Source of the DNA: Piromyces finnis finn
Lineage: Eukaryota; Fungi; Neocallimastigomycota
Direction: 5' to 3'
Assembly (NCBI GenBank): GCA_002104945.1
Contig: MCFH01000090.1
Location: 1 to 64,000 of the forward strand
DNA length: 64,000 bases
Shown: positions 46,464 through 61,000 of the stretch, piece after piece
Numbering within the stretch: position 1 is the stretch's first letter
Layout of the letters: every line of letters starts with the position of its first letter
The notes under the pieces: generated by a model
The model's input: only the letters and a program-made list of their open reading frames with translations
The model's database searches: none
Told to the model about the DNA's origin: nothing
Position numbers and translations under genes: made by a program

Positions 46464-47527
46464 AAAATGGTATTATTTAATAAATAATCTATTTTAATAA
46501 TAAAGCGTGAATTATTTTACAACCAATAAAATTTCAATTTCCAATATGAAACATAAACTTTTTTTAATTAAAAATGTTGAAACTAAAAAAGAAATACAAA
46601 ATTCTTTTTCAAAATAAAATAAAATAAAAAAAAAAAAGAATAATAATAATTAAATAGAAAATTAAGCATCTTTTTAAAAATAAAAGTAGAAACAAATATG
46701 AATTTTCATTTTATTATATTTTTATTTTGTTTTAATATTGACAGTGAAAATTACTTTTTTTAAAAAAAAAAATCATTCTTGTTATAATTATATTAGAATA
46801 ATATTTATTAATAATAATATTTAATCATAATTTATTATTTTAATTAAATAAAATATTGCGGCAATTTCATATATTTAAAAAAAGAAAAGAAAAAAAATTT
46901 TTTTGAATAACTAAAATTCATCATATTTTTAATCATTTATAATCCTATATCATACCTTATTACATTTTGATTATATTTATAGAATCATTCCATACACTTT
47001 CTATTTTATTTATTATTCATAAATCCTAGAAAAAATGCATTATTTCTCAATTTTTAAACCTAAAAAAAATGCAATCTTTCTTTATGCGTTAAAGAAGATT
47101 TAAAAAAAATGACCGTTAAAAAATTTTTTTCGATTTATTATAATTATAATGAAATTCATTTTATCCAATAAATTTTATTCAATTATCTTACCAAATTTAT
47201 TGTAATATATATACCATTATATATTAAATTAAATTAAATTTTTGTTTTATTAATTTTTAATTAATTTTTAAATTAAAAAAAAAAAAAAGAAATTTGTTTT
47301 TAAAATGTAAAAAAGAAGAAAAAAAATTTTTTTTCTGTTCATGACTAGAAGCTATATTATTTTTTATTAACCACATTAACTACCTTTAAATATTTTTTTT
47401 TTCTTTTTATATCTATTAAATAAACACCTAAAAAAATATTTTTTTGTAATTGTATATAGAAAAATAGAAAAGAAAAAACCGGTTATAATAATAGAAAAAA
47501 AAACGTAACCTTTTTTAAAATATTAAA

Positions 47528-54538: not shown

Positions 54539-57154
54539 AAAAAATAGGAATAACCAGTGTAATAAATTATTGCTAATATAACATTATAGATATAAATATA
54601 TCATTTACTTTTATTATTATTATTATTATTATTATTCTACCTACATAAATTTTATTAAAAGTAATTATTCACATATTCTATTAAATACATTATTTATTTT
54701 GTTTGTTTATTTGGTTGGTTTTTTTTAAATATTATATTTATTTATCTTATTAAATTTAATAATAATTTTTTTTTATTATTTGAAATATTTTAATAATAAA
54801 GATATATAAAAATATTAATATTGTTTTTTTTTTATTTTCTGCAAACTTAAAACAATGATTTTTATCTATTCATTTATTAATATATTTATATATGTAATTT
54901 ATTTAGCTATCTATTTATTAAATCTATCTATCAATTCAATTATATACATTATATAAGTATATTATTTAATATTGCTATATATTCAAAATAAATTATCATT
55001 AAAGTTTAAAAAACATATATTTTATTATAAATCATGAATATCATGGATATCATGTGTTTAATAGACATTTACTTTTTTTTCCATATATATTTAACTGCAT
55101 AGTTTCAAATTTTTAAATATATATATTTATATTCATTTATATATATTAAATATTATATTACAAATTTATTGATAATAAAGTTAAGATAAAAAAAAAAATA
55201 ATCAATTTATGATACTATATCATTAAAAAAAAAAAAAGGAAAAGTCACCTTTTGTTTTATATAACTCATTAATAGTATAATAAAATAAAATTTCTTTTTA
55301 TAAAGAAAGAAACTAAGGAATTGTAATAAAAAAAAAAGTTAAGAGAAATGTCTTTTAATATCAAGAAAACATAAATTGAGTATTTTTTTTTATCACTTTT
55401 AATTTTTAAAAATAAAACTAATAAATATATTTAATATTAGTCTTTATCCTTAAATATACTGTAAACTGATCTTTATTCAAGTAGTTTATTATTTTAAGAA
55501 TTTTCATTATTTTTTTTGTAATAAAGAAATAATATTTTCCTTACTTTTAAATTTCTTTATACTTTATTAAATAACAAAGGCTTTACTTTTTTATATACTG
55601 AAAATAAGTGAAAAATTATTCATTTACTATTTTTTCTATATATAGAAATAATAGAAATAATAATAATCTAAATGTGTAATATAGCTTTCAAATAAATAGA
55701 TTGTCACTCAAAATATAAAAATAATAATAATAATATATAGATATTGTTCATCTTTATAAATTGAGCCATAAATGTTACATTTATTGTACAATTCCATTTT
55801 CAATAAACTATAAAATACATTATTAAAAAAAAATAAAAAAAAAAAAAAAAGACATTTAAAGTTACTATATATTGAATTATACAGTAAACTATGTAAAATG
55901 TTTATAAAAAATAATAATAAGGAAAAATAATCATAATAATGATAAGGAAAAAAAAAAATGTGACAGATACACTGGATTGATAGAATTTTTAAAAATAGTT
56001 ATTCCACAAACTAAAGTTAAATTTGTGTAACGTGAAACACCAAACTTTTTTGGATAAAAAATAATTTGATCTTGTTTGAATTAAAAATTGAATCGCTACG
56101 GTTAACCTCTCTAAAACTTAAACACTTACCATAGAATTAAAAAAAAAAAAAAAAAAACTTTTGAATTAAAAATTGTAATTTATAATAATTTAACTAGTGT
56201 AAAATATAATATGAAAATAATAGAGATTTCAAATAAAGTTTTTGGATATTGAATAATGGATTAGAATACTTTTACCACTGTAATCTTATAATTTTACAAC
56301 TTTGTAATAATACTTTTTTTTTTTTGGTATATTATTATGTGTTTAATAAAGTGTCATTAATCAAGGGAATACCTTTACTACATTAATACAATATTGCAAG
56401 AAAATAAGATAATACTATAAAAAACATGGATTTACTCACACATTCTTTAAAGGTAAAAAATTTAAAAAAAAAAAAAACACTTCAAATTTACATTCATCTT
56501 TTTTTTTTTTTTTTTGATTTTGATTAATTTTATATTTGCTTTTTTTTATTGCGTCAATATGAATAATTAGTTAATTTTTAGAGAATTAAAAACAATTACT
56601 TTAATAATAGTGATTATTTTTCTTCTCTTGGTCTTTTTTGTTTTGTTTTCGTTTTAATATATATTACAAATTCTTTTTTAATTGAGGTATTATTATTATT
56701 ATTATTATTATTATTAGTATTGGTAGTAGTATTAATAGTAGTAATAGTATAAAATAATTTCATTTTATTATGAAATTATTCACATAAATAAAGGTTTGAT
56801 ATGATTAAAATGTTAAATTATTTGGTATTTTTTTGTACAATTAATAAGATGATAATTATTATCTTTTTTTTTTTCTTTTGGGTAATATAGAAATAAAGTC
56901 TTCATATTTTTCCTTCTTGGGAATGATCTTTTTTTAAAAAAAAAAAAAAAAATCGATTTATCAAAAAAAAAAAAAATACTACTTATTTTCTTTATATATA
57001 ATAAAAAAAAATAAAACTTTAATTTTATATCTAGATTTTATATACAAGAGTTCCCCTTAAAGATTTTGAAAAATTATTAAATAATCTTCCATCAATAAAT
57101 TTATAAAATGAATAAATGAAAAAAGTAATTCTTCATTGTATCCCTTTTAACTAT

Positions 57155-57376
57155 CTATTGTTTTATTGGCTTATTTTTTACTTTTATTGGAAAACAGCAA
57201 AACATAGATGGATGATTTTTAACTGGTTTTTGCTTTTTCTTATCTTCTTGGGTATTTGTAGTAGTATTGTTGGTGGTGGTTGTAGTTGTTTCTGGAGTTT
57301 CATTTACTTCTTCGGTCTTAGTAGCCTTAGAAGATTCTTCTTTATTATCTTCGTCTTGGGGGGTACCATCTAGTCA
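57155..57376 (-). other. Candidate stop-codon readthrough extension of NDK (UGA-CUAG plus 72 in-frame sense codons)
   Basis: TGA (57376-57374) is followed by CTAG. The frame reads LDGTPQDEDNKEESSKATKTEEVNETPETTTTTTNNTTTNTQEDKKKQKPVKNHPSMFCCFPIKVKNKPIKQ up to TAG at 57157-57155. Confidence 0.72.
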
Positions 57377-58034
57377 CTCATAAATAATGTTATCAAGTGC
57401 ACGTGGGTAATCCTTAACACCTTCTGGGAACCATAAATTGATTTCTCTTTCGGCACTGGCAACAGAGTCAGAACCGTGAACAACATTTCTACCAGAGTCA
57501 ATACCAAAGTCACCACGAATAGTTCCTGGTTCAGACTTTAATGGATCAGTCTTACCAAGCATAACACGTCCATAGGCAACAACACCCTTACCTTGCCAGA
57601 CCATACCAACAACTGGTCCACTTAAAATGTATTTAACAATCTTTGGGAAGAATGGTTTACCAATGTGTTCTTCATAATGCTTAGTAATAAGTTGTTCATC
57701 AGCTTGAAGCATTTTAATACCAAGAAGTTTGAAACCCTTGTTTTCAAAACGCTTAATAATTTCACCGACAAGACCACTATTATATTATATTTTAAATTTA
57801 TAATATTTATTAATATTCTATTTTATATACTTTATGATTTTTAAACTTTTTTTTAAATTGATCAAACTCCATTTTTAATTTTGAAAATTAAAATTAAGTT
57901 TAAAATAAATAATTATTTCTAAAAAATATTATTTTTAAATTAAAATATTTGTTTTTATACTATTATTGAAGTCTTAATATTTACCGGGCAACACCGTCTG
58001 GCTTGACCATAATGTAAGTTCTTTCAGTAGTCAT
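57374..58034 (-). CDS. NDK1: Nucleoside diphosphate kinase (150 aa), 2 exons: 58034-57985 and 57776-57374
   Basis: [17 protein letters not shown]|[11 protein letters not shown]..., [17 protein letters not shown] (catalytic His), C-terminal IIYE. GT-AG intron in phase 2. Confidence 0.96.
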
Positions 58035-61000
58035 ATTTGTTATCTAATTTTTAAATTAAAAAAGATAAAAGGTTAATATCTTTTTTATTTTATTTAAAAA
58101 ATAAATATTTCGTTTATTATTATTTTTTTTCTTTATATCTAGTTTCACCTATACTATACATATATATATTTTTTTTTTTAGTTTTTTTTTTTTGTTTGTT
58201 TGTTTGTTTTGTTTACCCTCTCTATAAATTTTATATTCCTTTATTTCTAACTATTTAAACTATTTTTTATTTTACTCGTAGGGTAACGTTTACTTTCACT
58301 ATATATTTTTATTCGTTATTATCCTATATATTATTATATTTCATTTCTATTATTACTATTGTTATTTTCTTATATTCCTTTTTTATGTTTTTTATTCTAT
58401 ATATTTATACACTATCTTTCATCCATTCTACATAATATTATTACTCTTTAATATAAACTAACAAGAAAACATACTTTTATTTATTAAAAAAAAAAACTAC
58501 TATTAAAATATATAATTTAAAAGGCTTTTTTTTATATTATTTATTTATAATTATTTTAATTTTCAATATTTATTGAAAAGGTTTAGTTAAAGAATTTAAA
58601 AGAATAAAAGTATAAACAGCCTCTTTTATACTATTTTAAAAAATTAATAAAAAAATTAATTAATGAGAAATAAACATGATTTAATAATTAATTAATTTTT
58701 TCATATTTGAATGACCTATAATCAACAATATTATGTAGAATTTATTATCCAATGAATCCACCATATATTACAATATATAGTAAATATAATAATGATGAGC
58801 CATTAATAAATAAAGAATTAAAATGAATTCATACTCAACTATTATTGATAATAAATAATGATATAATACTATAGATATAATAAATAAAAATAATATTATA
58901 AGATAATAAATTAGATTAGTATATTTATATATATTATACATATATTATAAAATAATTTATAGAATTCTATTTATTATAAAATTATACTTTTTTATTTCTG
59001 TTTAAAGATTGTTCATCTCAACTTCCTTTTTTGGTATACTATCTTTTGAGTTTAAATTAATTATAATATATCAACGATTAATTAATTATATTTATTTAGT
59101 ACATTCATTGACTTAATAATAGATTAGTTAATATTTTATTTAAATAAATAGTATTCATTCATTTAATAGAATAGAAACTTTAAAAAAAAGAATTAACAAG
59201 AAAAAAATAAATGAATCTCTTATAAAGTTAAATGATAAATAAGATGAATAATATATTACAATACATTATAATATATATTGATATTCTATTTTTAATAAAA
59301 TGAGGTTAGTATTGATTAAAAAAAAAACAAATTTATACTCTAAATAATTTAAAATTAAATTAGTTCTTTTTATATTATTCATTTCTCTAAACGCTTATTT
59401 ATAAGTTCACTTAATTATCAATATACATTTATTTATATATTTATTTTTTCATTTATTTATTTAATATTTGTTGATTTCCTTTTTAGCATGAAGAAATTAG
59501 TAGTTTTAATAAAATAAGCTATTAATTAAAATCTTTAATACAAATGAAACCAAATAAAGTATTATTAAAATGATGATAGGAATGGTATTTAATAAAAATA
59601 ATTGCCATAAAGGTTCATTTCAATGATTTGATAGGGTATACATGGAGAAAGGAATATAACTTGATAACATAATAACAACAAAGTTTACACCTAGTAATAT
59701 TTAAAAGATATAATAGTGGTGTTTAAAATAATATTTTTAAATATTAATTAATAACCATTCTAATTATTATATTAATTATTATCATATGAATAAATAAAAC
59801 ATAGTTCAATTTATTAAGCGATTAAATATAATTAAAAAATAAAGTGTTTTTTTATAGGATGTATATAAAAGAACACTTATTAATTTTAATAAATACTATA
59901 AACATTCATATATATTTTTATTTTTATATTATTACTTTTATTTTTCATACCATCAAATGGCAGTTATTAATATTATGGTGTTGTACGAATAACGTTCTAA
60001 TAAAATATAATACCAGCTAATTCTGGTTACAAATCAAATGGATGGTATAAAAAATAGGTTTCATTTTTTCTATTTAAATAATATATTAATATTTAATTAT
60101 AATATAATAAAGAATAACTATTCTATTCTATCTCATTGTTTTGACAAAAATAGAATAGCAATAAATTTATAATATAATAATTTGTATATATTATAGTATA
60201 CTTTTTATATATTATTAAATAAATTGATCTGAATTTGAGAATTTTTATAAAAAAAAAAAAAGATTTAGATAATCTATTTATATAGCACATAATATCTCTA
60301 AAAAAAAAAAAGATGATTTAGAACCTCTATCTTTTTTTTTTTTGTATTTATTTATTAGTTGAATAATCTTTTCAAGGTTGCATGTTGTATTTAACATTGT
60401 GTATCATTTTTTTTTGAGGTGTTAATAAAAGAATGAAAGGGTGTAAATGACGTAAATAATGATATAAATATTGGGGTATTTTATTTTTATAATTATTAAT
60501 ACTGCTTAAACGATTAATTACTTTTTATTATAAATAAAATTTATTAATATAATTTATATTTAATATAAAAAAAAAAGTTTTTTTTTAAAAATCAGCTACT
60601 ATACATTCAATCCAAATAAACCAGAAATGTTAATGATCCCTACCAATCTATAAAAATGACTTTTATTATTTCCATTTCTTTGGAATGATTAACTTTTTTG
60701 TTGATTTATAGGTTCTTATAATTAAAAGGCCTTTGAATCTTTTTTTTTTCTTTTTTGGCTAGCTATATCAAACAGTTTAACTAATGTGGCCGTTAATTTT
60801 CCATTTTAATAAAAACTAGAGTTGAATAAAGTATCATGTGAATGGTGCAATACTCCTTTTCAAAAAAAATTTTTGATTTAGATAATATATAAATAAAATA
60901 TATTTCTTCATATATTATTATAAATCATTATTTCTATAGAAATTATGTCAATGAATAAATATATATTAAATTAATAATATAATTAAAGTATATTCATCAG

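Follow-up and report, generated by a model that had tools for sequence, protein, structure and literature searches.

The NDK gene and its transcript

The window, a 64,000-nt stretch of contig MCFH01000090.1 of the gut fungus Piromyces finnis, contains a two-exon NDK gene on its minus strand (Table 1). The second exon, which shares 84–98% identity with Pfam PF00334 relatives in a protein search, ends in ATT ATT TAT GAG TGA. The spliced coding sequence specifies a canonical 150-aa protein with the ending DNIIYE, identical to the public NDK protein P0128 (ORX41376.1), the last residue of which is residue 150.

Each of three RNA runs, drawn from as many studies of this organism, contains one abundant NDK transcript contig, with a word depth of 990–2333. 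Across 57029–57776 the contigs show zero differing letters and zero indels, and the sole well-supported joint is that of the 208-nt intron. As the contigs span this interval unchanged, the TGA is real in the mRNA, the tail downstream of it is unspliced and there is no polyadenylation ahead of the tail; this evidence consists of assembled contigs, from which rare isoforms drop out. The preliminary description had proposed RNA data as a check on whether the region belongs to unspliced mature mRNA, and the contigs of the three studies, with the TGA intact, agree that it does. The NDK transcript is bordered by long T/A homopolymer runs at 56923–57028 and 58150–58218. These were masked as repeats in the RNA mapping, and the 3′ end of the mRNA is placed at or beyond 57029.

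Table 1. Features of the NDK locus, in order along the minus strand (positions are those of the window)
Feature	Position	Strand	Basis
NDK exon 1, ATG to ...GCC CG	57985..58034	-	contigs join 57985 to 57776 in three RNA runs
Intron, 208 nt, GT..AG, GC about 0.1	57777..57984	-	joint 57776/57985 in contigs of runs X1, X2 and X3
NDK exon 2, last sense codon included (..DNIIYE)	57377..57776	-	sequence and relatives
Invariant 21-nt context GAG TGA CTA GAT GGT ACC CCC, proposed readthrough signal	57359..57379	-	11 identical sequences
Stop TGA, proposed to be leaky	57374..57376	-	sequence; no difference in transcript contigs of three studies
72-codon in-frame extension: LDGTP, acidic/Thr-rich disordered linker, C-terminal motif	57158..57373	-	open frame, orthologs
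Conserved C-terminal block KPVKNHPSMFCCFPIK	57182..57229	-	Cys-Cys codons at 57194–57199
Second stop TAG, end of extension	57155..57157	-	sequence
Remainder of 3′ UTR under transcript contigs	57029..57154	-	contigs of X1–X3 extend to 57029

An open frame beyond the stop codon

After the TGA the sequence continues CTA GAT GGT ACC CCC CAA, and the frame remains open for 72 sense codons until the TAG at 57157–57155. This arrangement of IIYE-TGA-CTAG and open frame had been given in the preliminary description exact to the base, and the translation quoted there, KKKQKPVKNHPSMFCCFPIKVKNKPIKQ included, matches. The tail had also been described as richer in GC than the intergenic DNA, which holds at 0.33–0.36 in the tail versus 0.11–0.21 in the flanking non-coding DNA. 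The two other sense frames contain 5 and 8 stops, and 0.7% of shuffles of the tail's letters remain open. In one sequence alone, such an open frame is moderately unlikely to arise by chance; chance is ruled out as the explanation because the tail is conserved in ten further orthologs.

The ortholog set was assembled from a protein search with exon 2, an unbiased scan of JGI metagenome contigs with NDK protein, and genome records. It comprises 11 distinct DNA sequences, the window and 10 others, and takes in Anaeromyces robustus (L013) and three Neocallimastix assemblies (L045–47, of the same type as L001). Two further variants are known as proteins only (P0131 and P0135), and L051, which matches the window exactly over 3661 nt at identical coordinates and is thus the window itself, was left out of the ortholog count. 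All 10 of the further distinct gut-fungal orthologs contain TGA-CTAGATGGT(ACCCCC), the NDK frame staying open beyond the TGA for 51–72 codons, and in every gut-fungal NDK sampled the TGA is followed by CTAGATGGTACCCCC. The NDK dS among these orthologs ranges from 0.12 to 0.99. Several of the contigs, from metatranscriptomes of other species, are cDNA-like in that intron 1 is absent, and still contain the TGA and the tail. The TGA-CTAG, the open downstream frame and the [FLT]CC[FL] motif, which had been put forward as features to look for in related fungi, are retained in all sampled Neocallimastigomycota orthologs.

Metagenome gene callers recorded gut-fungal NDKs at 171–225 aa with the sequence ...IIYEWLDGTP..., reading the TGA as Trp. 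Comparison with the DNA showed that the ‘W’ of these called fusion proteins is a TGA in every case. The JGI, ENA and Logan callers presumably chose a TGA=Trp code for AT-rich contigs (L001–L012, L015 and L017–L022), and the resulting fusion proteins (P0001–P0003, P0007–P0010 and P0122–P0142) are an artefact that exposed the conserved tail.

The second stop is TAA in nine of the 10 orthologs and TGA in the other. In the two lineages in which the second stop is, like the first, a TGA (L002:948-962; P0135/P0136), the callers continued into unconserved sequence (KY, KLRCLPIL...); nothing in these sequences suggests a second functional readthrough. Beyond the gut fungi, the NDK gene of the chytrid Spizellomyces ends in TAG-ATG, behind which 36 unrelated codons are open. 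In all the non-gut NDKs that the metagenomes yielded, the stop is TAA or TAG, with 3–29 unrelated open codons thereafter.

The stop codon and its context

The TGA CTA G occupies 57376–57370 on the minus strand, with UGA directly before CUA G. Experiments in Ustilago maydis and human cells have established CU(A)(G) directly behind UGA as a signal for readthrough, in accordance with the initial account of this locus (PMC4207609, PMC4359377, PMC12233894), and as a context of high readthrough (PMC4207609, PMC4359377). Positions as far as +11/+12 and −8/−9 also modulate UGA readthrough (PMC12233894). In the gut fungi the run of 21 nt from −3 to +18, GAG TGA CTA GAT GGT ACC CCC, is identical in 11/11 distinct sequences. 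Within the final 330 nt of the NDK coding sequence the longest such run measures 14 nt, versus 21 nt at the stop, and the codons immediately upstream of the 21-nt run vary synonymously among the orthologs.

The codons within this context are ones that the gene avoids elsewhere. CTA accounts for none of the 76 other Leu codons in the NDK sequences and CCC for one of 130 Pro codons. GAG makes up 12 of 184 Glu codons, 11 of the 12 being the last codon before the TGA. ACC makes up 18% of Thr codons. The concentration of avoided codons (CTA, CCC and GAG) within the stop context points to selection on this context at the RNA level.

The window contains a single copy of the 18-nt string TGACTAGATGGTACCCCC, where 0 would be expected. 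The heptamer TGACTAG alone is not rare, as 2 are found in the window versus 2.15 expected. The other copy, at 47342–47348 on the plus strand, lies in intergenic DNA of 17% GC, ends no open frame and was rejected as a chance match. An analysis of stop-codon usage through the long open frames of the window was dropped, as introns, antisense frames and a LINE all interfere with it.

Folding of the RNA 3′ of the stop revealed no conserved structure: RNAalifold returned −1.8 kcal/mol and detected no covariation, and z for the single sequence was 0.2. For this reason the proposed readthrough signal appears to be linear.

Evolution of the tail

In frame 0 there are zero stops in 11/11 tails, and the two other sense frames contain 2–9 stops each. 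When each of the 11 tails was shuffled, the frame was open in 0.6–3% of trials (P 0.006–0.03). GC falls from 0.29–0.37 in the tails to 0.10–0.20 immediately past the second stop.

Nucleotide pairwise alignments were too noisy in this low-complexity, AT-rich sequence and were replaced by a test anchored on the distance from the stop to the Cys-Cys codons. Seven different spacings, from 129 to 174 nt, separate these codons from the TGA, all of them multiples of three. It follows that at least six length changes kept the frame, for which the probability by chance is approximately (1/3)^6, or 0.001.

Near the end of the tails stands the motif KPxKxxPSx[FLT]CC[FL](F)P[IL], with residues rich in Lys and Arg behind it. 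Residues L1–P5, K49, P55, C59, C60, F61 and P62 of the tail are invariant in 12 sequences, and the LDGTP at its start was excluded as protein-level conservation because the nucleotides themselves are invariant there. The Cys (TGT/TGC), Phe, Pro and Ser codons of the C-terminal block differ synonymously between species, and the variable sites of this block number 8, 5 and 13 at codon positions 1, 2 and 3. The linker has a pN/pS of 0.87, the C-terminal block one of 0.55 and the basic end one of 0.49. The median pairwise dN/dS of the whole tail is approximately 0.7, versus approximately 0.2 for NDK.

The preliminary description had named synonymous-biased substitution as a check; in the C-terminal block, third positions are the most variable. 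Given the values for the linker and for the whole tail, most of the tail is constrained in frame and composition only. The constraint is concentrated on the stop context, on the reading frame and on the C-terminal block, and the linker can vary almost freely. The linker is held mainly to its frame and to an acidic, Thr- and Lys-containing composition, as is usual for disordered spacers, and the terminal motif to its sequence.

The basic end has been shortened in some lineages. The tail of L014 (546-701) stops right past CCFPI, and those of L007 and P0131 end in KGKK and GKSK. Of the whole tail end, only the Cys-Cys-Phe-Pro core is retained in every case.

Nature of the tail

The tail was compared with known classes of targeting signal. 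As had been proposed at the outset, it is not a PTS1: no tripeptide of the [SAC]-[KRH]-[LM] kind is present among the C-termini of the sampled orthologs, which are IKQ, KKQ, SKQ, TEN, GKK, TDN, TEQ, AKK, FPI and RKQ. A CaaX box is absent in 10/11 sequences, in which the cysteines lie 9–14 residues from the end, and L014 (CCFPI) is a formal exception. The tail contains no hydrophobic stretch of the length that a tail anchor needs. Nor does it contain a conserved ATG, from which it follows that the tail is not translatable on its own.

A search of the tail alone against a set of 5.8 billion proteins found no stand-alone homolog within a length window that excluded fused gene calls. Among 1.84 billion cluster representatives, a profile of 12 tails matched nothing but the cluster of the gut-fungal NDKs themselves. 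The best score in a protein atlas search with the last 31 residues was 0.63, with no functional lead. AlphaFold2 assigned the tail a pLDDT of 58 and no secondary structure, which amounts to predicted disorder.

The terminus that is predicted to be disordered carries an invariant Cys-Cys, preceded by F, L or T, followed by F or L, and succeeded by K/R-rich residues. These are the sequence features of an S-acylated polybasic membrane anchor, and the tail would on that basis belong with such anchors. Adjacent cysteines of this kind are part of the palmitoyl and polybasic signals of plant type-II ROP GTPase C-termini, of GAP-43 (MLCCMRR) and of PI4KII-alpha (CCPCC motif). Like the NDK tail, these signals combine adjacent Cys among hydrophobic or aromatic residues with a Lys/Arg cluster on a flexible terminus. 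The NDK tail differs in having no sequence homology to them and no CaaX box, and its acylation is hypothetical.

Alternative explanations

Several other accounts of a conserved frame behind a stop codon were weighed. A minor alternatively spliced mRNA could skip the stop, with a donor in the last NDK codons joined in phase to an acceptor ending in CTAG; with a donor such as GAA G|GTGTTA, which lies 51 nt upstream, the product would be an NDK shortened at its C-terminus and continued by the tail, and CTAG would be a 3′ splice site. The interval from GAAGGTGTT to CTAG is a multiple of three with both ends conserved, and a minor isoform would escape notice in contigs, which drop rare variants. 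Nevertheless, no such joint is present in the three RNA runs or in metatranscriptome contigs of 8 taxa, and the putative intron has approximately 40% GC, a poor donor and no AT-rich body, compared with approximately 10% GC in the real intron. Such splicing would also sacrifice the conserved NDK C-terminus and would leave the constant TGA, the invariant GAG and the ACC CCC unexplained, so that this account is very improbable. An equally low probability is given to an untranslated tail that acts as a conserved 3′ UTR regulatory element, for example a site for an RNA-binding protein, with the open frame as a by-product. The first 15 nt past the stop are indeed conserved at the nucleotide level, and the linker dN/dS is near 1. 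Against this, 51–72 codons are free of stops in one frame only, across 11 diverged sequences from a genome of 80% AT. The distal motif has stayed in phase through at least six length changes, the changes at Cys-Cys, Phe and Pro are synonymous only, GC drops sharply at a TAA, and the RNA folding analysis described above found neither conserved structure nor covariation.

Deterministic recoding of the UGA is less probable still. A-to-I editing of UGA to UGG occurs in the sexual stage of some ascomycetes, and stop-loss editing exists in fungi. Here, however, the TGA stands in the RNA contigs of three studies and in many metatranscriptomes, and the A of the UGA is preceded by G where known fungal editing prefers U. 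The other deterministic route would be selenocysteine, for which UGA is the codon. Some early-branching fungi have selenoproteins and the Sec machinery, and Neocallimastigomycota are unmentioned among the Sec users in that work (bioRxiv 10.1101/314781). An Rfam scan found no SECIS in 56800–57500 up to E = 10, with chance-level matches only, and a Sec residue between the enzyme and a disordered linker would have no plausible redox role. The least probable account, to the point of being negligible, ascribes the coding-like composition to a gene on the opposite strand. The window does contain an 85-aa plus-strand ORF at 57116–57373, antisense to the tail, and one antisense frame is free of stops in 4 orthologs. 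The antisense frames of the other orthologs contain 1–8 stops, and the product is a Phe/Leu-rich mirror of the A-rich coding frame with no conservation signal; moreover, the Cys-Cys motif and the phase of the indels are defined on the NDK strand.

Proposed readthrough and its consequences

Conservation extends to the stop and its context, to the open frame and to the terminal motif, and the tail is present in the mature mRNA. The best explanation, to which a probability of approximately 0.78 is assigned, is that the NDK mRNA of P. finnis and of all sampled Neocallimastigomycota undergoes programmed UGA-CUAG readthrough into a tail that is not a PTS1. That readthrough takes place at the NDK UGA at all is very probable from the comparative and transcript data. 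It is a possibility at somewhat less than even odds, suggested by the composition of the terminus, that the Cys-Cys/aromatic and basic cluster acts as an S-acylation/polybasic membrane anchor.

Under programmed readthrough, most ribosomes would terminate at the UGA and release the normal 150-aa NDK. A minority would insert a near-cognate amino acid at the UGA and continue for 51–72 codons. The near-cognate insertions at UGA in other eukaryotes are Trp, Arg or Cys. The product would thereby gain a disordered acidic/Thr-rich linker and the short conserved Cys-Cys/basic end. The two cysteines might then be S-acylated and keep the extended NDK at a membrane with the help of the basic cluster, while the long disordered linker would allow the enzyme body some distance from the bilayer.

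Because eukaryotic NDKs are hexamers, a few tailed subunits could tether hexamers composed mostly of normal subunits. At a readthrough rate r, a fraction 1−(1−r)^6 of the hexamers would bear one tail or more, or about a quarter at r = 5%, and a small recoding rate could in this way relocate a sizeable NDK pool and supply NTP/GTP locally at the membrane. Candidate docking sites for the tailed hexamers are the plasma membrane, the zoospore flagellar membrane and the hydrogenosome surface, and candidate purposes are GTP for dynamins or small GTPases, or zoospore flagella. Taken as a whole, the picture is tentative: a clade-wide recoding would give a soluble enzyme a lipid/polybasic anchor, tailed subunits would dock NDK hexamers for local GTP, and the long linear signal (−3 to +18) would be, perhaps, a lineage-specific, high-efficiency context in strict anaerobes.

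Relation to known readthrough systems

Functional readthrough at UGA CU(A)(G) is known for Pgk1, Art1 and Rpe1 of Ustilago maydis and for mammalian LDHBx and MDH1x (PMC4207609, PMC4359377, PMC12233894). Like NDK, these are highly expressed metabolic housekeeping enzymes in which UGA-CUAG is conserved across a clade, with an in-frame extension carrying a short end, which is functional in the known cases. LDHBx piggy-backs LDHA, and by analogy a sub-stoichiometric extended subunit of the oligomeric NDK could carry normal ones. The known fungal cases form a PTS1 subclass, whereas the NDK tail is without a PTS1. The NDK tail is also longer, at 51–72 codons with a disordered linker versus 6–20 codons for LDHBx and MDH1x. 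The proposed NDK case further differs in its invariant context of 21 nt (−3 to +18) and in its host clade, which is strictly anaerobic with hydrogenosomes.

A UGA CUAG extension that alters membrane sub-localisation and does not lead to peroxisomal import is found in AQP4x (PMC12233894). AQP4 is already a membrane protein, whereas the soluble NDK would acquire membrane affinity, and the two extensions are unrelated in sequence.

On the best reading, the type of mechanism is known, namely functional UGA-CUAG readthrough, with which NDK agrees in all the features open to a sequence test, and the novelty lies in the gene, the clade, the unusual payload and the unusually long invariant context. 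A full-text literature search returned no paper that describes readthrough in either NDK or anaerobic fungi, in keeping with the absence of any earlier account stated in the preliminary description. Going by the literature searched, no case of programmed readthrough has been described before in Neocallimastigomycota, and this one would also be among the few fungal cases with a non-peroxisomal payload. It would correct the annotation of a very highly expressed gene, as all named gut-fungal genome annotations stop at 150 aa. The reach of stop context is under study in human cells (PMC12233894), and the invariant 21 nt amount to a natural experiment on the same question. If the tail is a lipid anchor, it would show how a single gene can cheaply keep part of an oligomeric enzyme membrane-bound, and would serve as a portable membrane tag in a group of organisms for which genetic tools are scarce.

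Membrane-associated isoforms of NDK encoded by separate genes include human NME3, with an N-terminal hydrophobic anchor, and NME4, with a basic cardiolipin-binding surface. In the longer NDKs of other chytrids the extension is N-terminal and none is C-terminal. The NDKs of Synchytrium, Hyaloraphidium, Amoeboaphelidium and Cladochytrium (P0012, P0015, P0041 and P0077) have 191–200 aa, with a hydrophobic N-terminal extension of 40–50 residues that is signal- or anchor-like, and the usual ...IYE end. The presumed outcome is the same for NME3, NME4, these chytrid paralogs and the gut-fungal enzyme, namely a membrane-held NDK that feeds local GTPases. The means differ, as the former use paralogous genes and N-terminal segments, while the gut-fungal NDK would use one gene, stop recoding and a C-terminal lipid/basic signal. 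The N-terminal extensions of the zoosporic-fungal NDKs may thus represent a different route to a membrane-bound or secreted pool.
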